From contig NIVC01002313.1 of assembly GCA_002269645.1 (NCBI GenBank), positions 62,001 through 126,000 of the forward strand: 64,000 nucleotides of DNA. The letters are read 5' to 3'. Source of the DNA: Macrostomum lignano. Lineage: Eukaryota. Numbering within the stretch: the first letter of the stretch is position 1; each line of letters opens with the position of its first letter. The translations under genes and the position numbers were made by a program. The notes beneath the pieces were generated by a model. That model worked only from the letters and a program-made list of their open reading frames with translations. It had not been told where the DNA came from and did no database searches. This document shows positions 6,177 through 59,897 of this stretch, in pieces.

Positions 6177-6330
<154 letters not shown>

Positions 6331-7544
6331 ATGCACTTAGCAATTTCTGCAATATGCCCCAACCGCAGGGCAACTCCGCCCAGAAACAAACTGCATCAGC
6401 AATGCAGGAGCGTTTCGGACACCTGTGCTGACAGGAAAGCGGCGTCCTGCCCCCCCCCCCAGATAAACTGCAAACTGCAGCGCAAGTTTGTTGGCTTTGG
6501 ATGGGCAGGCCTTAGAAGCTGCGGTCTTTGTTTGAACAAAGAACCCCCTCCGGTCCAATTAGGAAATTTTTTTCCTCTGTTGATTTGGCATCGCAGTTCC
6601 AGGTCCGCCTTGCAGGGGTCTTGCGCAGATAAGAACACAGGAATTCAATAACAAAAATTATTCTAAAAAAATTAAAGCACCCCAAATTTAATGCCGGACA
6701 ATTATCTGTTAATTTAACGAAAATTTTCACCTGTTTTCAAACGCAGACGGTCAGAGAAGCGCGGCATTAAAAGTTTTCGCACGTTCAATTAAATTTTTCC
6801 GATTATCAGGCTGCTTAGCGGGTCGATTTGAAAGCAATAAAAATTAGCGACAACATTTTATCTCTGCCAGCCGGATTTGCACCTGTCCTGGCGTGGCCAA
6901 TTAGCTGCAATTTTCAACGATTTTAGCACCCAATTATCGAGGTTATTAAAGTTACGATTGAATGGCGGTCTTAGCCTTTCGGCGCTGGACTTCGAAGCTG
7001 TAAAAATCGCCCTGTAGAGCCCGTAGCAGTTAATAGTAGGTGCATACAGGAATATTGATTTTTTCCGGAGCTCTCCCAGGACGGCATTAGGAGATGGAAG
7101 GCGAAAATAGATTCAATTTTAATTTTCAAAGAGATGCCGACTGAATTGCCAACGCTGCATACGCTCGTATTGCTACAACAAAAAGTACGCATGTCCTGTT
7201 TATGCTACTGTTTAGTTAGATATAAGTAGAAATACGAGTATAAGGATTTTATCAATCACATACATTTTAAAAACCGAAAATTATTACAGAAGTCGAAAAA
7301 GTCAGGAATTAATAGAGACAGTAATTTCGCGAATAGATAAAAAAGCAGAATTTTGCTGGTCATCAAAAGATAATTTTAGCCTTAAAAAAGATTTCAGAAT
7401 AACGGATCAGTAACGTGCCCAGTGACAGAAATTCCACGACAAATGGCTTTCTTGAAGAGAAACAGAACGGGATAGCAATTTCTACTTACATGTTAACAAG
7501 GTTTTTATGCCTAGACCAAGGCGCCAAAAATTTTATATTTGACG

Positions 7545-11000: not shown

Positions 11001-13474
11001 CGTTCACCGCGCTGAGCAGTGACCAGGTCTTGGAGTGCAGGCGCACCAGAATCAGGGTGATGAAGGCGGCCACGCAGCCGCTGATGCAGGTGTTCAGCAT
11101 GGCGGTGGCCACCACCACCCATCGCCTTTTCCCGTGATGTGATTCAGCGAGCCGCCATTGAATGCGAAGAAGCCGAAGAACAGAATGAACGCGCCCAGCG
11201 AGACTACGGGCACGGAATGGCCGCGGATGTCCCGCGGTTTTCCCGTCGCGGGGTCGAACCGGTGCAGTCGCGGCTTTAAAATGCAGGCTGCCACGAAGGC
11301 CGACGTGCCGCCAAGGAGGTGGACGACTCCGGAGCCCGCGTGGTCCTGAGGTGGGGCGGCTTCTGGCATCAGCTTTGGTCTCCGCTTCCCACTCGCTCTA
11401 ACCGTCTCTCCGGTTTTCACCCTACCAAGAGACAGGGGCGCCTACCAAGAGACAGGGGCGCCCAACAAGAGACAGGGCGCCTACCAAGAGACAGGGGCGC
11501 CTACCAAGAGACAGGGGAAGTCACCAAGAGACAGGGCCACCCACCAAGAGACAGGGGCACCCACCAAGAGACAGGGGCACCCACCAAGAGACAGGGGCGC
11601 CCACCAAGAGACAGGGGCACCCACCAAGAGACAGGGGCACCCACCAAGAGACAGGGGCGCCCACCAAGAGACAGGGGCGCCCACCAAGAGACAGCATATC
11701 TCAGTCAATATCAGGGACTTTCCTTCCTCTGGCTGCAACCTCTCTAGCTGCCAACAACACCCCCCGTACATGCACCAGGCCAGGCGCCTACCAACCTGAA
11801 ATCCGGAGACGCCGCTTTCCCCATTCCAGTAGGTGACGTTCGCGCCTTGGCGCAGCCAGCCCGAGTCCGACCAGGCCCAGTGCGTGGCAATTGGATATGC
11901 AAATCCTGCGGAGTGCACAGAATTCGCGCATTTCTACTATGAGTAGAGTGTTAAAGAACATGTATTAACTAGTAAAACAGGGGTTGTAGACTAGTGGTTA
12001 GAGCGTTGGACTAACGACTTGAAGGTCTGGGGTTCGATTCCCGATCCCAATGGAACAATTTGTGTCCTTGAGCAAGACACTTAACACTGCATTGCTTCAG
12101 TTCACCCAGCTGTAAAATGGGTGCCAGCATTAGCTGGGGTAATTGAGGCTGTGTGTGGCGACCCCCCCTTCAGTCCTTGTACTGAACAGCCGTACGCAGC
12201 CTTCAGATGCGCCGCACAATATCTGCGGCTGAGCTGTCGGTTGCACATCTGGCCCAATTGGGACAGGTTAAATCAACTAATATTATTATTATATTATAAT
12301 AACTCGTAAATAATTAGTAAGTTTCAGCTTCTCTGTGCCCTTGTTTGACTCTCGCGGCTTGTCCACTTTTTAGTTTCGCCGAGGGTAAAAAAGCAATTAA
12401 CAACGCACCGGCAATGAGCACAGTGTAGAACATGTAGGCCGCGAACTCGCACCGTTCGGCCACCGCACCGCTAACGATGGTTGCAGAGGTCGAGGCGAAC
12501 ACGTAGTTGAGAAAGACGTGGGAGTACTCGCTGCTCGACAGGTTATGCAACGCCCAGTAGCGGGTGCCGCAGAAGAAGCTGCCCGGCTCGCCGAACGCCA
12601 GCGCGTAGCCAAATAGATAATAGGCTATGCCGCCCACGACTGCGGGGCGGGGGTGGGGGAAGAGCGGCCCAGCGGTTAACGCGTCCGACTCTCTTGCGTC
12701 ACAGGTACCGGGTTCGATTCCTCTCGGCACATTTTAAATAGGAATAACATTGGTGATAAGTGTCAGGGGAATGACAATGTGGTTGTCAAGGTGTGACAAT
12801 TTAGTGTCAAGGGAGTGACCAATTAAATGTCAGGAGAGTGACCAATTTGGTGTTTAGAGAGTGACAGAGTAAGTGTCAGAGGAGTGCTCAATTAAGTGTC
12901 AGGAGAGTGACAAAGTAAGTGTCAGAGGATTGTCCAATTTAAGTGTCAAGAGAGTGACAAAGTAAGTGTCAGAGGAGTGTCTAGCTAACTAGGCGTCAGG
13001 AGAGTGACCAAGTAAGTGTCAGAGGAGTGTCTAGCTAACTAGGCGTCAGGAGAGTGACCAAGTAAGTGTCAGAGGAGTGACCAATTAGGTGTCAGGAGAG
13101 TGACAAAGTAAGTGTCAGAGGAGTGACCAATTAGGTGTCAGGGAGTTACAAAAATACGCGTTGAGGAAGTGACGAAATAATAGCTATCAAAGAGTGATAA
13201 AACGGGCGTCAGGGTCAGGGTATGCGTCAGCATTCCTAGAAACACAGAGGACCCCCCGAAACTCACACGAGTTCATCATATTCTTGATGAGGATGTTGGT
13301 GACATTCTTTGACCGGACAGCGCCAGCCTCCAAGAAAGCGAAGCCGCACTGCATGAACCAGATCAATATGGAGGCGATGCACCGAAAATAATCGTTCAAA
13401 GAGTCGTTAGTGGCATTCACCTGCGCCTCCAGTTGATGGATTTGCCTGGCAAGTTCCGTGATGTTCCAGCCCAT
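8034..13474 (-). CDS. amt: Ammonium transporter (Amt family), 7 coding exons, about 535 aa; 1-nt frameshift in exon 4
   Basis: Exons (minus): 13474-13267, 12639-12409, 11905-11796, 11345-10989, 9963-9529, 9028-8972, 8242-8034. All introns are GT-AG with matching phases. Motifs: WFMQCGFAFLEAGAVRSKNVTNILIKN, FASTSATIVSGAVAER, YPIATHWAW, DHAGSGVVH, FAFNGGS, NGALAGMVSICAG, DDPLEAVGVH, EEKGLDIPKHGEPAY. Both pore His are present. The last two exons are inferred from splice sites and phase only. Confidence 0.93.
8270..8935. repeat. 11-bp G-rich minisatellite (GGGTGTGGGAT) filling Amt intron 6
   Basis: Tandem GGGTGTGGGAT/GAGTGTGGGAT units. The HPSHTHPT ORFs are its translation. Confidence 0.95.
9125..9355. 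repeat. 30-31-bp minisatellite (CCCACTCTCCCAGATCTCTAATCCCAATAGT) in Amt intron 5
   Basis: About 7 copies, plus (CCCAGAT)n at 9445-9520 next to the donor site. Confidence 0.9.
9967..10900. repeat. G/T-only degenerate array (GGTTTTTGGGTTC-type, 6-7 nt subunits) filling Amt intron 4
   Basis: Seen directly. The long FGFGF ORFs are artefacts of this array. Confidence 0.95.
11420..11695. repeat. 20-bp minisatellite (CCACCAAGAGACAGGGGC[G/A]C) in Amt intron 3
   Basis: About 13 tandem copies. Confidence 0.93.
11980..12300 (+). mobile_element. tRNA-derived SINE with CORE-like central domain and (TAT)n tail, antisense in Amt intron 2
   Basis: A-box-like TAGACTAGTGG and B-box GGTTCGATTCC in a tRNA-like head. 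This is followed by TGTGTCCTTGAGCAAGACACTTAAC...CAGCTGTAAAATGGG, resembling the MIR/CORE consensus TGTGACCTTGGGCAAGTTACTTAAC...CATCTGTAAAATGGG. Ends in a TATTATTATTAT tail. Confidence 0.8.
12663..12730 (+). pseudogene. tRNA-like relic or SINE head in Amt intron 1
   Basis: A-box-like GGCCCAGCGGTT and B-box GGTTCGATTCC about 50 nt apart. The acceptor, D and T stems do not pair cleanly, so it is not an intact tRNA. Confidence 0.55.
12770..13150. repeat. Degenerate about 23-bp repeat (AAGTGTCAGAGGAGTGACCAATT-like) in Amt intron 1
   Basis: Recurrent GTGTCAG(A/G)GAGTG motif, with an exact duplication of about 50 bp at 12961-13070. Confidence 0.8.
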
Positions 13475-22829: not shown

Positions 22830-22860
22830 GACAGACAGACACTCAGACAGACACTAAGAA

Positions 22861-22897
<37 letters not shown>

Positions 22898-22900
22898 GTC

Positions 22901-22951
<51 letters not shown>

Positions 22952-22960
22952 TAGACAGAC

Positions 22961-23015
<55 letters not shown>

Positions 23016-23249
23016 TGGACACGCAGACAGACAGACAGACAGACAGACAGATGGACAGACAGACAGACAGACAGATGGACAGACAGACAGACAGACAGAC
23101 AGTCAGACAGACAGACAGACAGACAGACAGTCAGACAGACAGACAGATGGACACGCAGACAGACAGACAGACAGACAGACAGATGGACAGACAGACAGAC
23201 AGACAGATGGACAGACAGACAGACAGACAGACAGTCAGACAGACAGTTA

Positions 23250-23298
<49 letters not shown>

Positions 23299-23315
23299 TG
23301 GACACGCAGACAGAC
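22830..23315. repeat. (GACA)n microsatellite with variant units
   Basis: Seen directly. Confidence 0.97.
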
Positions 23316-23510
23316 AGATTTACAGAGTAAAGCAGTGAAATTATACACTTTACAAAGTAAAAAACTAGTGACACTACAGACTATACAGATAGGCAACCAT
23401 TACCGGTAGGGACTTTAGAAATAGTTTTATCAACTCTCAAAATACAGTAACAATCCAGCATTAAAAATTAGTAATTTCAAATTCTACACGCTTGCATCGG
23501 CACAAGGTCA

Positions 23511-38400: not shown

Positions 38401-38747
38401 GGTAAGTCGCATATTGTAGGTCCTTGTATATGCAATAGAAGTTACATGCTAAAAGCAAGCGCCGTGACCCTCTAAATCTCGGTAACGCCCGGACTGGCGA
38501 ATAGCTCAGGCCAAGGTTATTAGCTAAGAACGCTATACCAGAACGTACGGTTGGTAAAGTGGCATCATTATAAATCTTGAGTGTCAGTCAGGTGTAATGC
38601 AGTGTCGCTGCACAATATTTTTTATTTGAAAGAAGATATAACTTACAATACAATACAATGCAGCATCTTAACGACTTAATATTAATAAATTCGAATATTA
38701 AAAACAATTTTTAGACGGTTTCTTTACTGCAAAGACTCAATTTATTG

Positions 38748-40420
38748 TAGGCGCCGCCGCCTCGGCGAAACGAGCTGCGGACCTTCTTCTGTTAACGTTG
38801 AGCTGCCAGAGGAGAGCTCCCTTAACATCAGCCCCATCACCATCGACGAGGTGCTCCAACTTGCAAAGAAGACGCCAGGCAACAAGGCTACTGGACCCGA
38901 CGACGTGCCTGTCGAGGTGCTGCTCCTCCCGCAGGTGGCGCTGGAAGTCAGGCGAGTGATGAACTGCGTGCTAGCTGGGGGCCCCGCCCCTGCTGAGTGG
39001 CGGACTGCGCATATCGTCGGGATCCCAAAGAAACCAGGTTCCGTCAAGGTCGAAGAACATCGCGGGATTTCACTAATGTCCTGCACGGCTAAGCTGTTTA
39101 ACAGAGTTCTGCTGTCGCGGCTGCAGCCAGTGCTGGACCCGTAATTCCTCCGGCGCGAGCAGAACGGATTCCGGCCAGGCAGAGGCACCGTAACCCAAAT
39201 TCTCGATCTGCGTCGAATTCTAGAAGAGGCCCGCATCCACCAGTCGATCATCATCTGCATCTTCGTAGACTTCCTGAGGGTCTTTGACTCGGTGTCGAGG
39301 CGGATCATCGCGAAAATCCTGCGCACGTATCATGTACCTGAGCAGCTGGTGACGGCTGTGTTAGCTCTGTACCAGAAGATTAGGGCGGCAGTTGTGATAC
39401 CGGATGGCCTTTCCGACTTTTTCGACAAGTCCTCCGGCGTTCTCCAAGGGGACACCTTGGCTCCTTTTCTGTTCGTCCTGTTCCTGGACTGGGTACGTAC
39501 TGCGCATGCATGGCCTCCCTGACGACTCCAAAGGATTCTTGCTCTGCCGCAGAACAAACAGGCGACACCCCGCCCGAGAAGCGACTCTCCGTTCTAACCT
39601 ACGCGGACGACCTAGCGCTGCTGCCTAGCACAGCTGAAGGAGCTGAACGCCTGCTAGACCAGCTGACGGCGGCGGCCGCTGCGATCGGACTACTGTCCGT
39701 GAATACCAAAAAGACAATGGTGCTTACCGTGCCGACGGACCTCCCAGCTGAGGTCTACTGCCGCTGCACGAACGGGCAGGTTGCGTTGCTGCCCCGCTGC
39801 AAAGAGTTCGTCTACCTCGGCGGTCTGGTGCCAAGCATCACGGACGACCTGGCACGGCGCAGGGCGCTTGCCTGGGGCGCATTCCGCACCGAGCGGACTG
39901 TCCTGCAAAGACCCGCGCTGCCGCATCGGCTGAGAGGGCGACTGTTCCAGGCCGTCATAGCAACGGTCCTCCTTTACTATGCTTAAACGTGAACACTGAC
40001 CGGCCCGCAGGAGCGGCAACTCGACGCCGTTCACGCTGGACTCCTGAGAGCCGCCTTCGGTGTCCACTACTCGCCGACCGCCACCACCAACACCAGCGAT
40101 GACGAGCTATACCGACGAGCCCAGCTCTCCCGACCCAGCCAGCTGCTGCGCATCCGGCGCCTACAGCTGGTTGGCCACGTCATCCGGGCAAGAGCAGTAC
40201 TGCAATGAGCCGCTTCAGGACGTGCCTCTGCTATCCCTTCAAGGACCGCAGCGGCTTGGTCAGGCGAGAAGTCTGCGTTTCGTCGACCTGCTTCTAAAGA
40301 GACGCTGAAATTTCTGGCCCTCGCTGACTTCCTGTTCTGTGCAAATCTGCACTTGCGCGCGCCTTTTAACAGCAACCCAACTTGCCTTGCCCAGAGGGTT
40401 GCTGTAGTTTGTTGTTGTTG
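38748..40420 (+). mobile_element. 5'-truncated, decayed RTE-type non-LTR retrotransposon (reverse transcriptase region)
   Basis: Motifs KATGPDD, W..A.IVGIPKK, HRGISL, EQNGFRPGRGT, FVDF..VFDSV, GVLQGDTLAPFLF, YADDLALL, FVYLGG, and LLYY.*T*TLT. In-frame stops at about 39142, 39984 and 39990, and a frameshift at about 39500. Ends in a (GTT)n tail. Confidence 0.9.
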
Positions 40421-41518: not shown

Positions 41519-43018
41519 TCATCGCTGTACAAAGTCTAGCTTGTGCCAGCCTGGTTGCCTTGGTGTCGTAGTCATTCCGCGCTCAATGTCAGCAGCTTTA
41601 TCTTTGCAAGAGGCTGCAAGTGTCACACTGTACTTCTGCATGATGGCTGCGAATGCCATGTAGATCTCCAGTCTGGCCAAAGATTCACCTGGACAAATCC
41701 TTCGGCCGATCGAAAATGGGATCAAGTATTTTGATGGTGAGTACTCGCCTTCGCAGTCAAGGAAATGCTCAGGATAAAACTGGTCCGGTTTCTCCCAGAT
41801 TGAGGCGTCGCGATGAGCGCCGTATACAAATGGAACTATTATAGCATCCGCAGGTATCCTGTAGCCGCGGAACGTTGTGTGTTTCATGGCTCGATGCGTC
41901 AGACTATTGAATGCAAGCGAGGCGTATCTCAAACTCTCATCAATAACTGCCTGCATGTAGTGCAGCTGCGGCCTGTCGTTGATCTGAGGTCGACGTTCGC
42001 GTCCCACGACTTCGTCCAACTCCTGCTGCACCTTCGCCTGCACTTGCGGGTACAGGCACATGTGAGCCAACAGCCACTCCATCGACTTCGAGGTGGTGTC
42101 AGTGCCGGCGATGAACATCTCCATGCAGATGCGCACCAGATGGAACGGCCTGTGGGTGTAGAAGTCTCCTTTGGCTTCATACCGACGTCTCTCTTGTATG
42201 TAGGCGTCACATATGCAGAGCGGCTCAGCGTTCGGGTCAGTAAGCTCGGCCTCCTTTTTCTTGATCTCTTCTTCGAAGAATTGATGCATTGCCAGCGTAG
42301 CTGTTGAAGCCTGCTGTGTGATGGACAGCCTTTTTAGCAGCGGAGCAAAGGTCGGAAATAGCAGAGTAAGACTGCTAGCCAGACTGTCGTTCAGCAATTT
42401 TTTAGCATTGATCAGGAAGCTCTCATAATTGGGGTTTTCGTTCGCATAGCGCTTACCGAACACCAGCATAGCAATCACGCAATTAGCCAGATCGCTTAAC
42501 AGGCGGGATGAATCCACCTCGCTGTTGCAGCTCTCAATGGAAGCCAGGATGGCTGCGACCTCCTCGTTAATCAACGCAAGCGACTCATTCTTTCCAAAAC
42601 CAAACTCGCGCAGCATGCGCAGTCCAACTCGACGCTGCTCGCTCCAGGTTTTACCTTCGCTAAAGATGATGCCGCAACCATTTGACAGCTCGGCGGCTTG
42701 TGGCGGCCACAACCTACCCGAGAACATGTCGTCCTTCAGCATTTCCTTCAGCATCTCGTAGGAGGACACCACAATCATCAGCCTCTGTCCGGCCCGGAAC
42801 GAGTAAATCGGTCCATACTTCTGGCGCATTGCCTCCTCGCTCTCGTTGAAGTGGTCGGTGTCCAGCCAGGGCAGTCGGCCGAGGAGCGGAAGGCCCAGCG
42901 GCCCGGGCGGCAGCTGCGAGGAGCGGTACAGAGACCGCAACGTGTAGGCCGCAGCCAGAGCACCCGCTCCAATCAAAGCATTGCGCGATGTGAGCTGATT
43001 TTGCAGGAATTCGTTCAT
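41519..43018 (-). CDS. Cytochrome P450, clan 2 (CYP2-like), intronless, 499 aa
   Basis: N-terminal anchor, LPPGPLGLPLLG, WSEQR (WxxxR), AGTDTT I-helix, ESLR K-helix, PEHF, and heme motif FSIGRRICPG. Confidence 0.96.
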   Translation of the reverse strand: MNEFLQNQLTSRNALIGAGALAAAYTLRSLYRSSQLPPGPLGLPLLGRLPWLDTDHFNESEEAMRQKYGPIYSFRAGQRLMIVVSSYEMLKEMLKDDMFSGRLWPPQAAELSNGCGIIFSEGKTWSEQRRVGLRMLREFGFGKNESLALINEEVAAILASIESCNSEVDSSRLLSDLANCVIAMLVFGKRYANENPNYESFLINAKKLLNDSLASSLTLLFPTFAPLLKRLSITQQASTATLAMHQFFEEEIKKKEAELTDPNAEPLCICDAYIQERRRYEAKGDFYTHRPFHLVRICMEMFIAGTDTTSKSMEWLLAHMCLYPQVQAKVQQELDEVVGRERRPQINDRPQLHYMQAVIDESLRYASLAFNSLTHRAMKHTTFRGYRIPADAIIVPFVYGAHRDASIWEKPDQFYPEHFLDCEGEYSPSKYLIPFSIGRRICPGESLARLEIYMAFAAIMQKYSVTLAASCKDKAADIERGMTTTPRQPGWHKLDFVQR

Positions 43019-43447
43019 GCTTATTGTATTAGATTTATTTTAGATTCAACTGGGTGGGCTATAGGTTTTTGGAGCTGGCTATATAGAATTTGCCAATTGC
43101 ATTCTCCAAGGGCCGGGTTGGGCTGACTACCTAAACAGCGTGCAACTCAAACAATGAAGATAAGTAAGAGAACGTGCTAAGAAAAAGACACGCGACTTTT
43201 GATTTAAAACGCGTGACAGCTAGAGCTTGAGAATTATAGAGTTGTTGTACTCGTACACTGTACTTAGTTAAATTAAGTATAAACCGCACATTAGTGCCCA
43301 GCGCGTTGATTTGTACATCGCCGCAAACCCCCGCCCCCTTTGGGTGGCAGGGGGTGTTTTTAAACCCCCGTCACGCTCTACTGGCGGCTCAACTTTGTCT
43401 TTTCGCAGTGAAATTTCTTTGACTTAGAATAAAAATTTTGCTGAGTC

Positions 43448-44124: not shown

Positions 44125-44375
44125 TGTGACATAGTGACACGATGAACTTTGCTATAGGTTGCATGCACTGTAGTGTTGACTCACTAGCAGTGAAGTTGTT
44201 ATTGATCGGCTTAGAGATTGTATTTTATTCCACCCACCCCATGCGCGCGTTTGAATCTGTCTGCACCCACCACCTCAGTGCTAATAATAAAAGTGAACAG
44301 CCTAGCTCTCAAGCGAGCACCTTTTACTCACTCCTGCAATTCCACACTTCTGTCTCGCTTAACAAAGTTATCACA
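44125..44375 (+). repeat. 5' LTR
   Basis: TGTGACA...TATCACA. Appears identical to the 3' LTR by eye and in two translated frames. Confidence 0.95.
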
Positions 44376-46631
44376 ATGGCGACGAGTCTGCCCACGCTGG
44401 GCCAACTGCTACCATCTACAAACATCGAGATCTTCCTAGAGCGTCTCGAGCAGTACTTCATCTGCAAGGAGGTGAAGGAAGAGGCAAAAGTGGCAACTCT
44501 GATCACGTCGATTGGAGAGGAGGCTTACATCACACTGCGGAGTCTGTGCCAGCCGGTCCAAGTGGCGCAGAAGTCTTACGCTGACCTGAAGAAGCTGCTG
44601 ACAACGCACTTCGCACCCAAGCCTTCGGAGCTAGCTGCGAGGTTCCGTTTCCAACAACGAACTCAGCAAGCAGGCGAGAGCTTCACGGCATTCATCGCGG
44701 GGCTCCAGGCTCTGTCAGCTGACTGCAACTTCGGTGAGTCGCTAAATGAGCGGCTCCGAGACCAACTCGTGTTCGGCCTTCGAAGCGACGCCTATCGAGC
44801 CAAGCTGCTGGAAGTCGTTGAGCCGACTTTCGAATCCCTGCAAACAAAGGCTATGTCGCTGGAGTCTGCAGAGCGTTCGTCCCTGGAGATGTCACAAAGG
44901 GCATCGGAGTCTGTTGCCAATCTGCAATTTGTCAGCAAGAGAGGTAGCCGCAAGCAGGTGACACCTTCAGCGCACCACAGAGGGCATCGGGTCAGCGGCA
45001 GCGACAACGGCGGCAGCGGCAGCGGCAACGGCGGCAGCGGCAACGGCAGCGGCAACGGCAGCGGCAACGGTGGCGGTGGCAGCTCATGCAAAAGCTGTGG
45101 CGGTTCCCACGAGCGTCATTCATGCAAGTTCAGGGACGCCAAGTGCCATGCATGCGGCAAGGTCGGCCATATCCGCAAGGTCTGCCAGTCTACCAAGCAG
45201 GCCAAGCTGCACATGCTACAAGAGGAGCGGATGGCACCTACTGTCGAAGGCGCGTGTGACACCCAGGTGCCCATCTTCGCAGTCCGACCAACAGGCAGAA
45301 ACTCTGGACCGACAGTCATGCTGCTCGTCAACGGCCAGGAATGCCAGTTTGTCATCGACACCGGCTCTGCAGTCACGCTGATGCCGCAGCAGCTGCAGCA
45401 AAAGTTACTCCCTCAGCTACAACTGGCTCCATCGGCTGCAGTGCTGCGAACCTTCACCAATGAACGCTTTCATCCGCGAGGCCAAGCCACAGTCTGCGTC
45501 CAGCACAACGCCCAGCAGCTACAGCTACCGCTGCTTGTTGTCGACAAAGGAGACACGGCACTGCTGGGACGAGACTGGCTGGCTCACCTTCGGCTGGACT
45601 GGCCGACAATAATGGCCCAGGTGCACGCAGTGTCCACCGATTACGACATCAGCGACCTGCATGAGAGATTCGCTGCGGTGTTCGAGAACCGACTTGGCAA
45701 ATTTCGACACAATCAAGGCTCCGCCCCGGTACAGACATGGCCATTTCCGACTGAGCCATGGGAGCGGTTGCACGTCGACTTTGTGGGACCCGTGGACGGC
45801 CGCACTTACCTGGTCCTGGTCGACGCGCACAGCAAGTGGCCAGAGGTGCACAGGATGAGCAGCACCACTGCAACTGCGACGATCAGCTGTCTGCGAGAAA
45901 TCTTCGCTCGTCTCGGCCTACCGAGAACCTTGGTGTCGGACAACGGGCCACAATTCGCATCGGCCGAGTTCGCTGAGTTCGTCAGTTCCAACGGCATCCG
46001 GCACATCTTCTCGGCGCCATTCCACCCGGCGACCAACGGCCAGGCCGAGCGCTTCGTCCAGGTGCTGAAGCGGCATCTGAGTAAGTGCGGTCACTCCGAC
46101 GCGCAACTTCAACGACTGCTGATGGCCTATCGCAACACTCCGCACAGCGTCAGTGGCACCGCGCCGAGTCAGCTGCTCATTGGCCGCCGGCTGCGCAGCC
46201 GGCTGGACCTCCTGACACCATCGTTGACTTCGGCCATGCAACAGCGACAGCAGCATCAGCTTCAGCAACAGCGGCCAGCGCGCCAGTTCCAGCCTGGAGA
46301 TCGTGTGCTCTACCGCGATTTCAGCACTGCTGCTCGTTCAGGAGAAAGCAGTCGCTGGGCCGAAGGTGTCATTGTCAATGCCGGCACTCGCAACTGCACA
46401 GTCGATTCTGGGCTCGGCGTACAAGCGCGACACGCTGACCAGCTGCTGGCGGCTCCCGCTGGGCTGGCCGAGTCGAACAGCAGCACAACCCCGGCCGAGG
46501 ACTGCGCGGCACCTGACGTTGGCGGCACGTCTACCTCGCCGCAGGCAGACACGGCTGACTCTGCTAACGAGGCACCCCGGCGCTACCCGAATCGAGTTCG
46601 AGCACCACCTGACAGATTGATGCTGCAGTGA
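44376..46631 (+). CDS. Gag-protease-integrase fusion ORF (751 aa) of the LTR element
   Basis: Gag (FLERLEQYF, RFRFQQRTQQAGES, LRDQLVFG), two CCHC knuckles (CKSCGGSHERHSC, CHACGKVGHIRKVC), protease IDTGSAVT, then directly the integrase DDE core (HVDFVGP, SDNGPQF, GQAERFVQ). No YxDD RT motif and no HHCC motif. Confidence 0.92.
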   Translation: MATSLPTLGQLLPSTNIEIFLERLEQYFICKEVKEEAKVATLITSIGEEAYITLRSLCQPVQVAQKSYADLKKLLTTHFAPKPSELAARFRFQQRTQQAGESFTAFIAGLQALSADCNFGESLNERLRDQLVFGLRSDAYRAKLLEVVEPTFESLQTKAMSLESAERSSLEMSQRASESVANLQFVSKRGSRKQVTPSAHHRGHRVSGSDNGGSGSGNGGSGNGSGNGSGNGGGGSSCKSCGGSHERHSCKFRDAKCHACGKVGHIRKVCQSTKQAKLHMLQEERMAPTVEGACDTQVPIFAVRPTGRNSGPTVMLLVNGQECQFVIDTGSAVTLMPQQLQQKLLPQLQLAPSAAVLRTFTNERFHPRGQATVCVQHNAQQLQLPLLVVDKGDTALLGRDWLAHLRLDWPTIMAQVHAVSTDYDISDLHERFAAVFENRLGKFRHNQGSAPVQTWPFPTEPWERLHVDFVGPVDGRTYLVLVDAHSKWPEVHRMSSTTATATISCLREIFARLGLPRTLVSDNGPQFASAEFAEFVSSNGIRHIFSAPFHPATNGQAERFVQVLKRHLSKCGHSDAQLQRLLMAYRNTPHSVSGTAPSQLLIGRRLRSRLDLLTPSLTSAMQQRQQHQLQQQRPARQFQPGDRVLYRDFSTAARSGESSRWAEGVIVNAGTRNCTVDSGLGVQARHADQLLAAPAGLAESNSSTTPAEDCAAPDVGGTSTSPQADTADSANEAPRRYPNRVRAPPDRLMLQ

Positions 46632-47890: not shown

Positions 47891-48819
<929 letters not shown>

Positions 48820-49667: not shown

Positions 49668-50580
49668 TTGGCCCTCGTGGGACGTCTCGGAGAGTCGCTC
49701 TCTGCAGTTGGACTGTTGCTTTGACTTGCAGCAGAAACCTAAGCCCAGCCGCGCACGCTAACTAACCAACCCAAAGCTCCGATGAAGGCTCTATGCAGCA
49801 TCGCAGGGTGCAGCAAAGTGTAAGTGCAGCAAGTCCCTGTGAATGCCTACTTGGAAGCTATAGCTAACAAAACTCTCTTTGAGTTCAATGACTTTTCGAT
49901 TTAGCAATCGCTAACTGCTCTAGAGGTCCTCAGAAGAAGAACAAACCGAGAATTGACATGCGTGAATTCAATGGGTTGAATTCGATTGGAATCTCAGCTG
50001 AAATCGAATGTCAATTAGATTTCAGCTTCGGCTGCAGAATTGACATGAACTCGCTCCACTGAGCAAGTCATCCAAGTTTCGATCGAATTATTCTCCAATT
50101 CTGAACGAAGTTAAGAAGTTAATATCATTACGAGCTACAGATACATTTATCTATTCATCACTATTAGTTCTTACGTATCCTGTATAGCATCATAAAAATG
50201 AGTTCATTGCGCAACCTTCTGATGGCACGCAGCCTAACATTTTCTCTTAATAACTGGTGCCTTGAACAAGTCTGATCGAAACTCGAATAAAATTTTACGA
50301 ATTTGTATTTCGAATCACATTCCACCAAGGAGGAGTCATACTGGTAATTTAGAGTTGGATAGAAGTTGCATGCATTATTGAAAATTATTAATCATATAAA
50401 TATACGCTCGTAAAATGTCGAAAATAAAGTCCTTCATTTGTTAGTTATAAAGCGTTTTACCTTTATATCTTTGAATCAGTAGAGATACGAAAATTAACTC
50501 GGAAAGTGTTGGGCGCAGAGTTTTCCGCTAGCAGTTTTTGAAATATGCGCATGTAAGGATAGCGATGGCTTCCTCGACAT

Positions 50581-53327
50581 TCAACGACAGCAAACGTGCA
50601 GATGCAGCTCGCCCTTGAACGGCTCCCAGCCTCTGAACGAGCAGTCGTCCGAGTCTCCGGGACTGTGGCACTTGATGGCCGAGTCGCCCAGCTTGGCCTT
50701 GCTGATCATGCCACTGCTGCTGGTGTCCAGCCTGATGGACTTCATGAAGCCGGAGCTGCGGGTGAAGCCCGGAGGACAGCTGCCGCCGTTCGACAGTAGG
50801 CAGTAGCTGTACTTGCTGGGGAATTCTCCTGAAGCGTATGCGAGAGATTTGTTATGGTGGAACATTGTTGTATTTATTTCGCAGATTCAGATAGAATAGT
50901 TTTATGAAAGGAATGGCTTGAGATTGAATTTAGTACCTGTATACATTCCATCTTACAATTTTGCGTTCAAGAACCGCCTGGTAGAACTTACTTCGGGGGC
51001 AGCTATAGATTAACAATCAATTGGGCTTCGTCTTCAATAGTATTTGGTTACGATCAGGAAACCTAATCGAAGCACTTTTGGGGCTGAAAGCTAACTTTAT
51101 CGTTTTAGTTCTTTGTTTGCCTTTTCCCATGACATTTAAAACCTTGGAGCTGTTGTAGTGGGCTGCGTTTGCTAGCTGAGATGGATTCTGACTACTAAAG
51201 GCTCGTTGACATTTACAACTTTAAAAAGCGTAATTTTACATTTACTGAGGTGCTATGTCTCAATGGGAGTACTGAGCTGTACTAAGGCTAAATGGGATTT
51301 AAGTTCTCCGATGCCATGTCTCGTGATGCTGCTGCTTGACTAGAAATAATTTGTTATAAGTGCATGCTTTCATATGGTAAACCAGGTAAACCTTCAGAAA
51401 GATTATCGAATGTAAATCAATTATTTCCATCGTGTTTTAGTTTAACTAAATAAAATACTGACGTGTAGCAATCGGGGAGTACTAATTGCTTACCAGCGCT
51501 AGCGAGATCCCTAAGCAACAAGCTGCTGTTTCGCTCCGGTACAGTGATCACTTTGAACGTGGTAGTCTGCTGGTAGATTGTAAGCTGCATGTTGTTGCTG
51601 ACCAGCTCTCGACGGGAGCGGAACGACTGCTCGTTGATTCGAACCAGCCGCAGTGGGCGCACTTCGAATCGCTCGCCATTCCACTGGACATTCAGGTTGC
51701 GTTCGGATAGCTTATTGTTGAGCTCCTCGCTTGTGAAAGAGTCTCGCTGATAAGACCGTCTGGAGCTCTCCGAGCCCCTATCCGTCACTGTCCTGCTCGA
51801 GCCAACTTTGGCAGAGAAAAGGAAAGCGGAACCGCCAGCTGACCAGCTGGTGCTCGAAGTGCTACCGAATAGTTTCTTAGCCTCGTCGCTGCTTCTCAGG
51901 TAATCCCTGTCGATCTTCATTAAACCCGTGGACTCGTCCTTTTTAAAGGTTCTTGAGGCTTCGTGCACAACGCGATCCGGACGTGCGTACACCGGGTCCC
52001 AGAAGACGCTGCGCCACTTGGTCTCGCTTAGTCTGTTGGCGTAGATTTCATCCTGCTTCAGGGCGCCCTCGATGAGACGCATGATGTCGAATTCGTCTTT
52101 CTTTTCAACGTATTCAGTCGACCGGATTGTGGTGGCCCGAACCGACGAGTAGGTCTCTTGCACCAGGTTGTTGAAGTCGTCGGCTCGCATATACCTGCGT
52201 TAGGAAGTTTTGTACTCAAATTAGCTTCGATGGCGTTGATACATTTAGTTCTACTAATCAATAGAGGCCTACACGACTCCAGTTTTGAGTGCCACTGTTT
52301 GATCAATGAGAAATAACAGTCATTGTTAATTCAGGACCTGGCATCTTTAATTACATACATGTACAATATGACTACGCGTGACATAATAACCTGTAATTTC
52401 CATCAGGAGGCAGCAGCATCAGCTTCGAAAAGGCAGTTGTCTCCATGAGATTGTCAGTAGTGACTGTCACAGTTTTGCTAACAGATTTCTGTGCGGTCAA
52501 GAAGCAGTCCAGAACGAGGCTGTCGAGAGACCTCGGGTTGTTTCTGACTTTCGTCAGCAGTCTGGCGCAGTAAGTCTCGTTTTTGCAAGCAAAAATTAGT
52601 TTCAACGGATCCCATAGGTGATTGGTGGCCAAGAACTCGTTCTCCAAGATGATGTTCTTCTTCAAGGGTCGGTTGCGAGATTGCCATTGGAAGCGGACCT
52701 TCTCCAGAGGCAGCAGCCGCACATCCGGTCTGGCGACCTTTTTCACCCGGGTTAGAAAGTCGACGACGCTGGCTGCAATGTTCGCGAGGGGTGGCAATTG
52801 GTACAGGATGTTCGATGAGGTTAGTTCTTGGTTTTTTAAGCCCTCAGTCAGTGCAGTTTGCAGGATCCCGGCAGACTCAATCACACAGCTACTTATACAC
52901 CACTGAATTCACAAGGCCGCGAATTCACATACGTGTACTATTTTGCTGCAAACGTGTCCAAAAATTCCTTTAAACCTTTAAAATATTTTAAAGGGTCTTA
53001 TTTTATATTATGGAAAGCATTTTTCTTACTCTGCATCTCGCTATCCCACATGATGACGTCGAAGCGGAGTTCCCAGAACTCTGTGAAGTCATTGTAAGTC
53101 AGCGAGCCGGATGTGTGATCCAGCAGCACCAGAGGCGTGATATAGAATGTCCTGTTCTTGGTAAGGTGCTGGAAGATGGACACGGTAAACTGGTTCTTGT
53201 AGCGGAACTGAGCGAACTCACTAGTCGAGTACTGACTGTCCCAGAAGCTGACGCAGTGCGCCGGCTGCCACAGGCAGATGGCAGCTGACAAAATCAAAGC
53301 GACTGAACTTGCCAAGTGCTTTGCCAT
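50581..53327 (-). CDS. Secreted protein, copy A (542 aa): uncharacterised N-terminal domain + ApeC-like Cys-rich C-terminus, 4 exons
   Basis: Exons 53327-53030, 52772-52391, 52194-51494 and 50828-50581; GT-AG, phases 1/2/1 consistent. Signal peptide MAKHLASSVALILSAAICLWQPAHC. C-terminal YCLLSNGGSCPPGF...HVCCR. The exon structure is mirrored in copy B. Confidence 0.85.
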
Positions 53328-53775
53328 GATTTTCGTATCCGTGTAATTTTGGCCCAACTTGGCTGCAGAGCTGCTTAACCAAGACGGTTATCAAGGTGAA
53401 ACGGAAATACCTGCCAATTTAGAAGTTGCTGGCTTGACTTGCACTGTATTTGGGTGCGCACACAGTCGAAATTCAGTTTCTGTTTAGACAAAAAGCACTT
53501 GGATCTGGAAGCCTGGCGTGCATTGACAATTTCACAAAAACAACTGATAAAGCCGCATGAGCGGAGAGGCGCAGGTGATCAAATGATTTGGGCAGACTGA
53601 TAAGATCGCGAATCACATGCTTTGCCGCGTTCGTTAACAGCAGTAGTGCGATTGGAGTTTCTTTGTAAAAAACTAACTATTTTGCAAATCCTGCATATTT
53701 TATAAATGGTGTCATTAGTGGCAAAAGACTTTCACTAAGGCCAACGCTAACGCAGGATTACTTCAGTGCGAGTGC

Positions 53776-54320
53776 ATTCAGGGGTGTCGCCACCGGGGGG
53801 GGACAGGGAGGACATATGTCCCCCCAGTAAAAGCTATGGGAGGACATGGCAATGCTTTGTCTCCCACCCCACCTCATGACCTGTTCTGGAAATCAGTAGT
53901 TTTGTTTCAGGGCGCCAAAATGAGTGCCTGCGGCGCTAAAATGAGTGCCTGCGGTGCTAAAATGAGTGCCTGCGGCGCTAAAATGAGTGCCTGCGGTGCT
54001 AAAATGAGTGCCTGCGGTGCTAAAATGAGTGCCTGCGGCGCTAAAATGAGTGCCTGCGGTGCTAAAATGAGTGCCTGCGGCGCTAAAATGAGTGCCTGCG
54101 GTGCTAAAATGAGTGCCTGCGGTGCTAAAATGAGTGCCTGCGGCGCTAAAATGAGTGCCTGCGGTGCTAAAATGAGTGCCTGCGGCGCTAAAATGAGTGC
54201 CTGCGGCGCAAAAACAAGCGCTAACAACATAGAATTTAAAAACTGTAAGAATTGACTCTGTACGGCTCGTAGAATTCTTGGCATTGTCCCCCCACCATAA
54301 AATCCATAAAATCCTGGATG
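53776..54320. mobile_element. MITE-like element (CAGGGGTGTCGCCACCGGGGGGGG... end) carrying an internal 21-bp array
   Basis: G7/C7 subterminal tracts (GGGGGGGACA...TGTCCCCCC) typical of invertebrate non-autonomous DNA elements flank the array. Confidence 0.4.
53905..54210. repeat. 21-bp minisatellite (AAAATGAGTGCCTGCGG[C/T]GCT)
   Basis: About 14 near-identical copies. The KMSACGA ORFs are its translation. Confidence 0.96.
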
Positions 54321-54781
54321 CATTTTCAGAACATTTATCTGAATACCAGCGGTTTGGCAGTGTGCACAACTAGCACGTGTGATGTACCGAAAAGTAAAAA
54401 AAAATGCGCGAACGTTAGGTAAATCATTCGCTATTCGAAGATTTAAGACGATTTACATTTTCAATAGCCAGAATTGCTCGCCAAGTTTAGACGATGGTTT
54501 GCTTGTCTGAGTTTTTATTTTTTTAAATTAAATTCATTTATTGCCATTTACAGCCAAATAAATGTGTTGGATGCAATGAGACTTATTTGACAATAAATTA
54601 CAAATTATTCGCATAGCTACTAATTACGAGTAACAAAAAGAATTGTTTGACAGAGCCTGAATAAAATTCAAATCAGGCACATTGTTTATATTCTACTACT
54701 GAATATTATTGAAAAACTTTCCGCGACCAGTTTTGAAATGGTCACAATCGGCAGTAAGGTTAGCGATGGCTTCCTCGACAT

Positions 54782-57700
54782 TCAACGGCAGCAAACGTGC
54801 AGATGCAGCTCGCCCTTGAACGGCTCCCAGCCTCTGAACGAGCAGTCGTCCGAGTCTCCGGGACTGTGGCACTTGATGGCCGAGTCGCCCAGCTTGGCCT
54901 TGCTGATCATGCCGCTGCTGCTGGTGTCCAGCCTGATGGACTTCATGAAGCCGGAGCTGCGGGTGAATCCTGGAGGACAGCTGCCGCCGTTCGACAGCAG
55001 GCAGTAGCTGTACTCGGTGGGGAAAGCGCCTGCGTTGAGGGAATGCGTTTAGTGCAGATTTTATGCAATTATGATAATTCATGATAATTAACTAAGCTCA
55101 GAGTCCAACTTTATTGTTTAACGAGATTAACGAGAACTGCTAATAACTCATAGGATATCAAATAAATTTGATGCTGACTTAAACTAAACGATTGAAATAA
55201 ATAAATTGTCCGACCAGTGATGCAGTGAAAGCCATCTCCTGAGAGTTCAAGGAAGCTAAACTTGGTCTAGCTGGAGCTTAACTTCGGGTCAAGGACTTCT
55301 AGACCTGACAGGACTTGTTGGCGGAGGCAACAAAGAAAGGAATAAAAAAATAGATTAAACTTAATGTAGCTTTTGACCTTGTACAGTCCCTCTTTTAAAA
55401 AAATATTCGATGCTTAAATCAAAACAGACATGAAGCAAACTGTCTATAGCCTAAGATATCAGCACTCCTCTGTGAGCTTTGGCATCATGGCCTCCCTTTA
55501 AGACGTGGCTGAACCATGACTCTCCTTTTGACGTTAGGCCTATCAACAAATCCAAATTGCCCTTTGGTATCTCAGCAAACAACCCCCCCCCCCCGATGAG
55601 CCACATAATTTCAGCGACTCCCCGATGACAGCTTAGCAATAAATCTTTTAAAAAATTTCCTATATCTCGGTAGCCACTCGGTACTTTTTCCCCGAACCGT
55701 GAAATCATAAGCCTTACGTTTTATGAGTGTCTATAAAACATTACTGTGCTCCTTGATTTAAGCTCCATTCTGGTGCCTAATGAGCTGGTATCGTTTGTGG
55801 AAGTTTATAACCACACCATGTTAGCTTGATTGCCACAGAAATTTTATAACAGCTGCGACATAAGGAGCAATTAAGGGTTTATGACAAAGTCTAATATTCG
55901 AATTTTAAAGGTACATATGATGTACCGCAGTTACGGGTTCTAAAACAGGTTGAAAATTAGTGCTGACTAATTGGAATATGGCAGTATTAATTAATTGGTT
56001 TGAAAATGAGCTTAGCAATTCTATGTAAAGGTCAGGAAATTTAAGCTTCAATTGAAACTTCGGGTCAACAATGCTAAATGTTGATATGATAATCATTTAT
56101 ACAGGTAGCTACAGGTACTTCCTAATTATAGCTATTAAAATTGTAGTTAAATATCCAACCCATCGTCCAACTCACCCACTGTCGCGGCGGTCTCCCTCAT
56201 CATGGCGGTCTCGTTGTGCTCCTGCCTAACAATTACGCTCAACGAAGCGCTCTGCTGGTAGATGGTCAGCTGCATGTTGTTGCTGATCAGCTCCCTTCGG
56301 GACCGGTAGGCCTGCTCGTTGATTCGAACCAGACGCATCGGGCTCACAATAAACCGTTCACCGTTCCATTCGACGTTCAGATTTGCGTCAGACAGCTTCC
56401 GGTTGAGCTCGTCCATTGTGTAGCGGTCGTTCAAGTGCGACAGGCTGCCGCTGATGGAGTCACCGGCCCTACGGGAGCTCTCTCCGCTGATTGAACCGCT
56501 GCCCAAACCTCTCCAGGAGCCCCCAACCGAGCCACTGAGGGACCTGCTTGAGCCGAACAGTTTCCTGGCCTCCTCGTTGCTTCTCAGGTACGCCCTATCG
56601 ACCCGAAGTTGTCCTGTAGAGTCCTCCTTTTTGAAGGTTTTGGCTGCCTCTCTTACGACTTTGTCTGGTCGAGCGAATGTCGGATCCCAGAAGACGCTCT
56701 GCCACTGCGTTTGGCTGAGAGTGCTGGTGATGACCTCGTCCTGCTTCAGCGCGCTCTCGATCAAGCGTACAATGTTTAGCTCATCGTACTTTTCAACGTA
56801 TTCGGTGGATCGAATAGTTGTGGCCCGAACCGACGAGTAGGTCTCTTGAACCAGGTTGTTGAAGTCGTCGGCTCGCATGTACCTTGCAGGACCAAAGACA
56901 AGGAACTGACAATGATACAGTGCTGACATTCCACTTCTGCACTTGAATTTTCTAATAGTGAGGCACTTACATTTACATAGTATAGTAAATGTTATAATGT
57001 TCTAATAAATCATCCCTAACTAATTTGGTCACACCTCGAATAGGACACAGGTCGCGCCACAAGAGTCTTTTGGACCTTATGCGATCGGCGACTCATTTGC
57101 TAGCAGAGAGCCCCTTTTTGAGATGTAAATCAAGCGCTATCCTCACCTGTAATTTCCATCCTTAGGCAGCATTAGCAGCTTCGAGAACGTTGTAGACTGC
57201 ATCAGGTTGTCAGTGGTGACTCGCACAGTCTTACTAGCCGTCTTCTGCGCAGTCAGGAAGCAGTCCAGCTTTAAACTGTCGAGCGACTCCGGATCCTCTC
57301 TGACCTTGTCTTTGAGCATGGCGCACTGCGACTGGTTCTTGCAGGCGAACGTCAGAGTGAGAAGCCGAGGCAGATGGTGCGTGGCGATGAACTCGGTTTC
57401 CATCACGAGCTTTTTCACGATGGGCCGGCTGCGCGACTGCCACTGGAAGCGGACGCGTTCCATAGGGAGCAGCTTCACGTCCGGGTTGCGGACGCCTTTG
57501 ACGGTGGTCAGGAAGTTGTAGACGCTGGCTGAAAAATGGAAGAGTAACGTTTGAACTCCTGGTTTGTAGGCATGAGCTGATACCTGAAAAATCGACTAAT
57601 TCAGAGTCATTAGTATTTTTGCCTTTGATGCTGGCGTCCTTGTTACTGATAACTGAAAGTCAAACAACGACAAAGCCGCTCAAACTCACCTTGCAACTCC

Positions 57701-57984
57701 ATGTCCCACATGATGACGCTGAAACGAAGCTCCCAGTACTCGGTAAACGGATTGTGCATCAGACTGCCGGACCGGTGGTCGAGCAGTACCAGAGGCGTGA
57801 TGTAGAACGTGTTGTTCTTAGTCAGATGCTGGAAGATCGACAACATAAACTGGTTCTTGTAGCGGAACTGAGCGAACTCGGCAGTTGAGTACTGGCTGTT
57901 CCAGAAGCTGGTGGTGGCAGACACAGGCTGCCACAGGCAGACGACAGCAATGACGACAGTCAGGGACGCAGCGTGTATCTTCAT
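54782..57984 (-). CDS. Secreted protein, copy B (543 aa), tandem paralogue of copy A, 4 exons
   Basis: Exons 57984-57690, 57528-57147, 56882-56176 and 55029-54782. Same intron positions and phases as copy A; exons 2 and 4 have the same lengths as in A (382 and 248 nt). Signal peptide MKIHAASLTVVIAVVCLWQPVSA. Confidence 0.85.
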
Positions 57985-58862: not shown

Positions 58863-59081
58863 AGTGCGTGACTGCGTACAGCAACGCGCCCGACTCTCTG
58901 GCCTTTTTCAAGCCCTTGAAGGCCGACCCCTCTCGAAAGTTCATTCGTCATTGGCCGAATTCAGCCGTTGGTCGAGGGCTCGAGTTTTCAAATCGGGGGT
59001 AGCGGAGGTGGGGAACGGGACAAAATCCCCACATCATCCCGGAATCGCCACAGCGTCTAGTGAGAGCTGCATGCCCAAGCC

Positions 59082-59897
59082 ATGAATCTACTGCTGCTTC
59101 TGGTTCACCTGCTGCTGTGCCAGCCTCAAATTGCACGCGTCGTCAACGCCCAGCTGCAAAATGCGGACCGCACAGGCGGGGTGTCGGTCCGGCTGACTCT
59201 GCAGCAGCCGCCGGAGCGGCATCTGCCGAAGCCACAGCCACCGAAGCCGAGTCAAAAAGAGCTGCGCCGCGGCAAGCTGACCAAGCTGCTGGGCAGCGGC
59301 GGCCAAGAGGACCTCCGGCTCGGCTGGCTGTCCGTCCGGCCGCGAGTTGCCAACCCTGGCGAGTTCGTCGAGCTTCAGCCGGAGCAGCAGACTCTGCTAA
59401 ACAGGCAGCTGGCCGCCGTCAACGCCTCGCCGCCGTCCGTCCGCGGCTGGCTGACGCGCCTGGCCGCCTGTCCGGGCCGGGCTAATTGGACGGATCTGGG
59501 TGATGCCGTCTGGCCGCGCTGGGCTCGCAGCGTCGAATGCGGCGGCGGTGCCTCTTGCGGTTGGCCGCCCGGTCTGCTGCGCTGCGGCGCCCAGCGTCGA
59601 CGGCGGCCGCGCCGGCTGCAGCTGCTGCGCTGGCGCTGCTCGAACAGCTTCAAGCGCCAGCTACGGCGCCGACTGCGTCGACTGCGCAGGCGACGACGCC
59701 AACGACGGGACAAGAAGGCGCAGCAGAAGCGGAGGAATTCGGCAGAGCAAAGGAGGAAGAAGAAGAGCAGGCGGTGGAACAAGCGAATGCGGAGCATCGC
59801 CGAGCGGCTGTCCGTGGTGGCTGGCGAGTTCGAGTGCCGCTGGGCGCCGCACGAAATTAGCGTGGTCAGCGAGGTCTGCGTGTGCGGCGGCCGCTAA
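59082..59897 (+). CDS. nlg: Noggin-like secreted cystine-knot protein with a long basic insertion, single exon, 271 aa
   Basis: Signal peptide; PKPSQKEL...KLLG; WL...ACP....WTDLG..VWPRW...VEC....SCGWPPGLLRC...L.LLRWRC; C...PHEISVVSEVCVC, all matching noggin motifs. There are 65 aa between Cys5 and Cys6, as in noggin-like (nlg) genes. Confidence 0.9.
   Translation: MNLLLLLVHLLLCQPQIARVVNAQLQNADRTGGVSVRLTLQQPPERHLPKPQPPKPSQKELRRGKLTKLLGSGGQEDLRLGWLSVRPRVANPGEFVELQPEQQTLLNRQLAAVNASPPSVRGWLTRLAACPGRANWTDLGDAVWPRWARSVECGGGASCGWPPGLLRCGAQRRRRPRRLQLLRWRCSNSFKRQLRRRLRRLRRRRRQRRDKKAQQKRRNSAEQRRKKKSRRWNKRMRSIAERLSVVAGEFECRWAPHEISVVSEVCVCGGR

Follow-up and report, generated by a model that had tools for sequence, protein, structure and literature searches.

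A tandem pair of predicted secreted proteins in Macrostomum lignano reveals a large unnamed domain family with exchangeable C-terminal modules, tentatively proposed to act in surface defence

A 64,000-nucleotide stretch of the genome of the flatworm Macrostomum lignano (contig NIVC01002313.1, positions 62,001 to 126,000 of the forward strand; hereafter the window) carries on its minus strand, between positions 50581 and 57984, two neighbouring genes, A and B, which encode predicted secreted proteins of the same design. Each one consists of a signal peptide, a long N-terminal domain (the N-domain) with an internal Ser/Gly-rich loop, and a short Cys-rich tail. The N-domain defines a large family of invertebrate proteins, with a fold that is apparently new, and nearly all family members start with this domain, the modules lying downstream being variable. 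The two proteins are already deposited as hypothetical, and the N-domain family is unnamed and undescribed. New means here unmatched and uncharacterised by the tools used, and does not imply a mechanism of a new kind. An earlier note on this DNA, made from its letters, had taken the pair as candidates for a family of pore-forming immune effectors; the modular organisation that it assumed fits the family, while the pore-forming part of the proposal is retained only tentatively.

Both gene models, rebuilt from the sequence, have four exons in the same layout. Their introns are GT-AG throughout, the exon phases match between the genes, the second exon is of 382 nucleotides in both, and the last one, of 248 nucleotides, encodes about 82 residues. 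The tandem pair of four-exon, signal-peptide proteins described in the earlier note thus stands, with intact models and with translations identical to the database proteins, which are M. lignano hypothetical proteins named BOX15_Mlig026829g2 (A) and BOX15_Mlig026829g5 (B). They are 69% identical to each other. Read from the sequence, each N-terminus shows a basic residue and a hydrophobic core, then AHC/VS (A) or VSA/TT (B), and is predicted to be a typical signal peptide. Three N-x-S/T sequons are common to both proteins at matching positions. All the motifs that had been quoted from the N-terminal region (FYITPLVLLDH, ELRF.V.MWD, LLP.E.VRFQW, W.SVFWDP..ARPD and NV.WNGERF...P.RLVRIN) occur in both A and B, and the tail pattern YCLLSNGGSCPPGF...CCR and the two Ser/Gly-rich strings are found in the proteins as they had been given. 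A UniRef entry called 'VWFD domain-containing protein' (P0003) also represents gene B, in a mis-predicted form that carries a deletion and an internal segment read in a shifted frame.

The claim that the N-terminal region holds no named domain was borne out by every collection in which it was sought. Pfam returned nothing but Serglycin noise for the whole A and B proteins, for three sub-regions and for the tail; NCBIfam and PADLOC scans of A and B gave no match; and the PDB sequences, searched with a single sequence and with a profile of 73 sequences, yielded UNC-45 noise only (expect value, E, 1.5). No match was obtained either by tblastn in a phage collection. An exhaustive HMMER search with a profile of A and B through 1.84 billion representatives retrieved 373 clusters at E<=1e-3, 160 at E<=1e-10 and 15 at E<=1e-30, and the matches all span query positions ~25-450. 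The members with a named source come from M. lignano, the acoel Convolutriloba, the nematode Plectus, the tardigrades Paramacrobiotus and Hypsibius, the bdelloid rotifer Didymodactylos and Daphnia pulicaria, which agrees with the statement of the earlier note that similar motifs occur in crustaceans and other invertebrates. Their annotations are hypothetical or uncharacterised only. Among three metagenome contigs with an N-domain that were inspected, two look eukaryotic, one through its sparse gene calls and the other through split housekeeping exons and an SRCR exon adjoining the gene; the third is too short. The literature searched contained nothing describing the family, nor the gene identifiers, nor a new pore-former family that would match. 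The family is called new here because it matched none of the known families with which it was compared.

Residue conservation, computed on 73 aligned members, is highest in the motifs MW.SVFW...N.RPDK.T..LN and VEW.GEKF.PKP..L.R.NL. P299 and D300 are invariant, W287, W292 and R298 are conserved in at least 90% of the members, and C168, D233, P65 and P121 are near-invariant as well. A and B match the N-domain profile over its full length, including these invariant and near-invariant residues, and so belong to the family. A few polar residues, D233, R298 and D300, hardly vary and might evoke a secreted enzyme, acting for example on glycans or cell walls, in which catalysis would fall to the N-domain and carbohydrate binding to the variable C-terminal domains; a conserved core with exchangeable modules of the carbohydrate-binding type is indeed also the logic of carbohydrate-active enzymes. 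Such an enzyme is very improbable here, however. The invariant positions are mostly Trp and Pro, a composition that suits a structural or binding motif better than a catalytic constellation, and no similarity to an enzyme family was detected by Pfam, NCBIfam, PDB sequence searches or Foldseek.

The structure of the N-domain was predicted with AlphaFold2 (AF2). An alignment of two sequences gave an unusable model, with a predicted local distance difference test score (pLDDT) of 34, and the model used here was built from the alignment of 73 homologues (mean pLDDT 79, predicted template modelling score 0.60, 280 residues at pLDDT >=90). The pLDDT is mostly above 90 over residues 30-340 and 378-445. 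The modelled domain is mixed alpha/beta, with a beta-rich N-terminal part and several helices, and contains two unusually long strands of 19-20 residues each (185-204 and 423-441). Strands of such length occur in elongated beta-sheet proteins. A Foldseek search of BFVD gave one strong match, the uncharacterised protein A0A7S7YF07 of Medusavirus stheno T3, a giant virus of amoebae (E 6e-14, probability 1.00), over 477 aligned columns with 13% identity and a global template modelling (TM) score of 0.27-0.34. This independent recovery in a viral model supports the N-domain fold being real and conserved, and leaves its function uninformed. In view of the low global TM score and identity, the sub-domains of the viral protein are probably arranged differently, or its model is poor. 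Since this giant-virus protein is the only significant fold match, an extension of the family to amoebae, or a horizontal transfer, would be a possibility. With no solved structural relative, the modelled fold is apparently new.

The long predicted strands also bear on a quite different reading, in which the N-domain would be a lipid-binding or lipid-transfer module, distantly akin to large lipid transfer proteins such as vitellogenin and apolipophorin, and would bind lipids of microbes or of the host within an open beta-sheet. Two automatic UniProt names point the same way, 'VWFD domain-containing' for P0003 and 'Vitellogenin domain-containing' for P0066 from Hypsibius. The first of these entries is the mis-predicted variant of gene B with its frameshifted segment, however, and the Pfam families Vitellogenin_N, DUF1943 and VWD remain unmatched at E<=10 in P0066, P0003 and six other members, and at E<=0.001 in the 73 aligned members. 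Lipovitellin, MTP and apoB are likewise absent among the top 50 Foldseek PDB matches listed, and a kinship with lipid carriers is very improbable.

The domain architectures across the family are more informative. The C-terminal module of relatives may be C1q (in Daphnia), phage-tail Collar, Link (Xlink), SRCR, WSC, a Cys-rich tail, or none. Close homologues illustrate this variety: the same N-domain is fused to WSC in another M. lignano protein (Mlig008808, P0004) and to C1q in Daphnia pulicaria (LOC124352561, P0027), whereas a Convolutriloba protein (LOC142349195, P0008) has the same tail as A and B; the N-domain is also shared by LOC129597251 (P0014) from Paramacrobiotus and by A0A914WSX5 (P0009) from Plectus sambesii. 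Matches to these five proteins range from E 2e-71 to 1e-27, and the motifs MW.SVFW...RPDK and VEW.GEKF.PKP..L.R.NL are kept. In three members (P0006, P0009 and P0023), the N-domain occurs without any head, and it is therefore the core of the protein. This pattern suggests a conserved core combined with a swappable binding module, as had been proposed for A and B, and since the core is highly conserved while recognition-type heads are exchanged, the core would be the acting part and the head the directing one. Such a modular logic of targeting and effector parts, as drawn from the architectures of the family, seems reasonably probable.

In A and B, the place of the head is taken by the Cys-rich tail. 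A related tail closes 14 other family members at their extreme C-terminus, usually behind a coiled coil, with the consensus W(P).G.[YF]C...C(P.GF)...CC[KR]-COOH; the tails of relatives have mostly four cysteines. ApeC domains hold a similar ...CCR. The tail had been described as ApeC-like, a description that finds partial support in some homologues and none in the A/B tail itself, which gives no match to the Pfam ApeC family (PF16977) even at E<=10. Three of twelve tails do match it, with 24.4 bits for P0033 (E 3e-5), 20.9 for P0008 and 13.7 for P0084, all below the gathering score of 26.5 bits. ApeC is the only Pfam family matched by these three tails, and the alignment covers profile positions 72-96 of 208 alone, on which their motif (L)PGWP.GSYC....CP.GF falls. 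Homologue searches with a word-indexed method, using the 82-residue tail and then an alignment of seven tails, found nothing, so that the link between the tail and ApeC comes from Pfam alone.

An ApeC domain has about 200 residues, eight of them conserved cysteines, and carries three DXED motifs; it binds peptidoglycan and multimerises in a disulfide-dependent manner (PMC9585378). Agglutination of bacteria is a further activity of the domain. The DXED motif is not strictly required, since all three copies are mutated in BgACP1 (PMC9585378). In comparison, the family tails have 50-82 residues, 4-6 cysteines and no DXED; the A/B tail, with 82 residues and six cysteines, differs from ApeC in both size and cysteine number, and its nearest approach to DXED is GDSDDC. 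Judged from sequence by the features that define ApeC, the A/B tail is not an ApeC domain, one motif being common to both; it may be a reduced ApeC relative, and such a short tail with the ApeC motif may help to define the minimal functional ApeC unit. In general design, A and B do resemble apextrin and other ApeC proteins, which are likewise secreted by invertebrates and pair a large N-terminal part with a module rich in Cys at the C-terminus. Apextrin itself combines a signal peptide, MACPF and ApeC, whereas no MACPF is found in A or B by Pfam or among the Foldseek matches listed.

Comparison of the two genes sheds light on the history of the pair. Rates of synonymous substitution (dS) and the ratio of nonsynonymous to synonymous rates (dN/dS) between A and B were estimated by the Nei-Gojobori method. 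They amount to dS 1.1 and dN/dS 0.20 for N-domain residues 26-340, 1.0 and 0.29 for residues 378-460, 1.7 and 0.61 for the Ser/Gly loop, and 0.13 and 0.14 for the tail exon. By these values the duplication is old and both copies are under purifying selection, and both genes look functional. The tail exon departs from this picture. A tract comprising exon 4 and about 60 nucleotides of the 3' untranslated region (UTR) is 92.4% identical between the copies over 317 columns (blastn) and begins exactly at the exon 4 acceptor, whereas identity amounts to 70-78% in the remaining exons and the introns cannot be aligned; the two tails are identical in protein from their first cysteine on (Cys470 in A, Cys471 in B). 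The low dS of this exon compared with about 1.1 elsewhere, together with the unalignable introns, indicates that it was homogenised recently by gene conversion. By tblastn, no further family copies or pseudogene fragments were found in the window.

Tandem duplication and concerted evolution of the tail exon would also suit a structural or secretory product foreign to defence, as in adhesive, rhabdite, eggshell or seminal-fluid secretions, where the loop and the terminal cysteines would cross-link. The proteins are indeed predicted to be secreted, end in cysteines and contain a low-complexity Ser/Gly segment, and lineage-expanded gland products are common in flatworms (general background; for adhesion proteins, PMC6410801). 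The family is found, however, in seven genera of distantly related invertebrates whose secretions differ greatly, and the gene is nowhere mentioned in the literature searched; a role of this sort is considered quite unlikely.

The Ser/Gly-rich loop is a part of the N-domain on which the pore-forming proposal drew. Its residues 341-375 have a pLDDT below 50 and no secondary structure in the AF2 model, and being modelled as disordered the loop is predicted to be exposed rather than buried. Its position is conserved across the 73 homologues, where it is enriched in Ser and Gly, which make up 16% and 8.5% of it, compared with 9% and 2% elsewhere in the domain. Amphipathicity was assessed from the hydrophobic moment at 180 degrees in comparison with shuffled loops. 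Family-wide, the excess of beta-periodicity is weak (mean z +0.67, t ~5.4, with p<0.05 in 18% of the loops), and the control for helical periodicity gave a mean z of -0.33. The loop is thus real and family-typical, but it constitutes weak evidence for a membrane hairpin. As a separate observation, a dibasic ESSRR is kept in the loops of all three Macrostomum paralogues (A, B and P0004) despite the fast evolution of this segment, and may be a candidate cleavage site for a proprotein convertase.

Taken as a working model, A and B would be secreted factors of surface defence that bind and then act. The tail would dock the protein on a glycan or cell-wall target, its terminal Cys-Cys would link subunits through disulfides, and the N-domain would act on the surface thus bound, the likeliest action being oligomerisation followed by membrane insertion of the exposed loop region with its Gly/Ser and hydrophobic residues. 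The action would resemble that of beta-pore formers, on a fold unrelated to those known. Among the closest parallels are chimeras of lectins and pore formers from invertebrates and fish, such as aerolysin fusions of the natterin/Dln1 type, biomphalysin, CEL-III and Pomacea PV2. Like these, the family would join a conserved effector to carbohydrate-binding modules, and it has lineage-specific gene expansions and a Ser/Gly(Thr)-rich segment, the beta-amphipathic periodicity of which is weak family-wide. Unlike them, it resembles aerolysin, MACPF and haemolytic-lectin domains neither in sequence nor in fold, and its loop is flanked by helices and highly variable in length. Counted in favour of the working model are the intact genes and the purifying selection, the breadth of the family, the confidently predicted fold with its recovery in the viral model, the swapped modules and the N-domains that stand alone, the recurrent tail with its ApeC motif, the conserved position, Ser/Gly enrichment and weak family-wide beta-periodicity of the loop, and the long strands.

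Other results weigh against it. Pfam detected no MACPF, aerolysin/ETX-MTX2, gasdermin or actinoporin domain in A, B or the 73 homologues; the PADLOC search for bacterial gasdermin gave no match for A or B either. With Foldseek, the best match among 350,542 PDB chains has an E of 0.22 and a TM score below 0.12. The MACPF/CDC fold is made of a bent four-stranded central sheet and two helical clusters; neither this fold nor aerolysin, gasdermin or lipid carriers occur among the 50 PDB matches listed, and a structural link to pore formers is thus not supported by the AlphaFold model. As regards the loop, its flanks are helices in the model (323-336 and 382-391), and not long strands of the aerolysin type, it measures between 10 and 542 residues, some members being nearly devoid of it, and it evolves close to neutrality between A and B. 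Of the amphipathic hairpin that had been read in this segment, the stretch itself and its exposed, disordered character hold, but the alternation of hydrophobic residues in A and B is no better than in shuffled loops (p 0.82 and p 0.61). A fusion-peptide-like character was also considered, from uncharged Gly-rich hydrophobic patches such as SFLGFGGSA, GLFGGIVS and GFWFIGG, and was rejected as a family-defining feature because only about 32% of the loops have one. A possible binding of glycan or peptidoglycan by the tail is suggested solely by the 25-residue sub-threshold motif. Lastly, a simple hydropathy criterion finds a signal-peptide-like start in 47 of 72 members and none in the other 25, some of which are probably truncated predictions, and two Paramacrobiotus proteins (P0024 and P0043) combine the lack of a signal peptide with a weak match to a GTPase of the AIG1/GIMAP/septin type downstream of the N-domain. 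These members suggest that cytosolic versions of the N-domain exist, and the domain would therefore not be strictly extracellular.

The same features lend themselves to a reading without membrane attack, in which the proteins would be soluble pattern-recognition molecules, agglutinins or constituents of a mucus matrix. The C-terminal module would bind the target, the N-domain would then be a non-lytic oligomerisation, scaffold or second binding domain, and the loop a flexible linker, possibly glycosylated or sensitive to proteases. The C1q, SRCR, Link, WSC and Collar partners, like the coiled coils that are frequent in the family, are typically met in oligomeric recognition or matrix proteins, the loop is disordered, variable (10-542 residues) and fast-evolving, and no pore-former fold was detected. 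A mere scaffold fits less well with a 420-residue N-domain carrying invariant W/R-P-D motifs and conserved far beyond the heads, nor would headless members be usual for it, and this alternative is held to be plausible but on the whole doubtful. For the membrane-active effector, insertion or pore formation by the N-domain is proposed as a tentative possibility. The full form of the proposal is unlikely: the N-domain would found a structurally new class of immune effectors that insert into membranes and form pores, in small aquatic and limno-terrestrial invertebrates and a giant virus, with interchangeable heads (the ApeC-motif tail, C1q, Collar, Link, SRCR or WSC) and cytosolic fusions to GIMAP-like GTPases, unlike MACPF/CDC, aerolysin, gasdermin and actinoporin. 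None of the findings that the earlier note had regarded as fatal to its idea, such as a confident match of the N-terminal region to a known non-pore-forming family or a buried hairpin, was cleanly obtained; nor were the pore-former-like fold and the true ApeC domain that it predicted.

Should the N-domain prove to be an effector, and especially one active on membranes, the innate immunity of invertebrates would gain a new class of proteins, and several hundred 'hypothetical proteins' of flatworms, acoels, nematodes, tardigrades, rotifers and crustaceans would find an explanation. Function aside, an animal domain of this size, folded with confidence in prediction and lacking both a Pfam model and a solved structural relative, is a clear target for family curation and structure determination. 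RNA interference, in situ hybridisation and transgenesis are established in M. lignano, which makes the function of the N-domain directly testable in this animal. The features of the pair are located in Table 1.

Table 1. Positions in the window of genes A and B and of the associated sequence features
Feature	Positions	Strand	Basis
Gene A (Mlig026829g2), 542 amino acids	50581..53327	-	translation identical to P0001
Gene A coding exons	53327-53030, 52772-52391, 52194-51494, 50828-50581	-	splice sites and frame rebuilt
Gene B (Mlig026829g5), 543 amino acids	54782..57984	-	translation identical to P0002
Gene B coding exons	57984-57690, 57528-57147, 56882-56176, 55029-54782	-	splice sites and frame rebuilt
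Gene A conserved N-domain (residues ~26-460, exons 1-3, minus loop)	51494..53252	-	HMMER, AF2, dN/dS 0.20-0.29
Gene A Ser/Gly loop (residues ~338-378), contains STSWSAGGSAFLFSAKVGSS and ESSRR	51741..51863	-	AF2, dN/dS, beta-moment
Gene B Ser/Gly loop (residues ~338-380), contains SLSGSVGGSWRGLGSGSISGES and ESSRR	56420..56548	-	sequence, beta-moment, dN/dS
Gene A exon 4 tail, YC..(7)..CPPGF...C...C...CCR-stop, 6 cysteines	50581..50828	-	sequence; no Pfam match
Gene B exon 4, same tail	54782..55029	-	protein-identical to A from first tail cysteine
Gene-conversion tract, copy A (exon 4 and ~60 nucleotides of 3' UTR)	50522..50831	-	blastn
Gene-conversion tract, copy B partner	54718-55032	-	blastn
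21-bp tandem repeat GGCGCTAAAATGAGTGCCTGC between A and B, 14.5 copies, 95% matches	53911..54214		Tandem Repeats Finder

Several other features were noted in the window. Just upstream of gene B, a GC-rich open reading frame (ORF) on the plus strand (59064-59894) matches the Noggin family (E 7e-8). On the other side of the pair, a single long ORF on the minus strand (41522-43039) codes for a cytochrome P450 that looks complete (Pfam p450, E 1e-100). It is followed on the plus strand by an ORF of 833 codons (44130-46628) which, from its retroviral-type aspartyl protease and integrase domains, is identified as the pol of a long terminal repeat retroelement. Nearby ORFs (38689-39983, plus strand) resemble fragments of reverse transcriptase by eye, unconfirmed by Pfam. 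Exons of an ammonium transporter (Pfam Ammonium_transp) lie at 9404-12733 on the minus strand, broken up or bordered by long low-complexity repeats, of the PKTRNQK type and others, between 9400 and 11800. Long microsatellite arrays of the (ACAG)n type, which translate as TDRQ/CLSV repeats, are present at about 6150-6500, 22830-23380 and 48050-48440.

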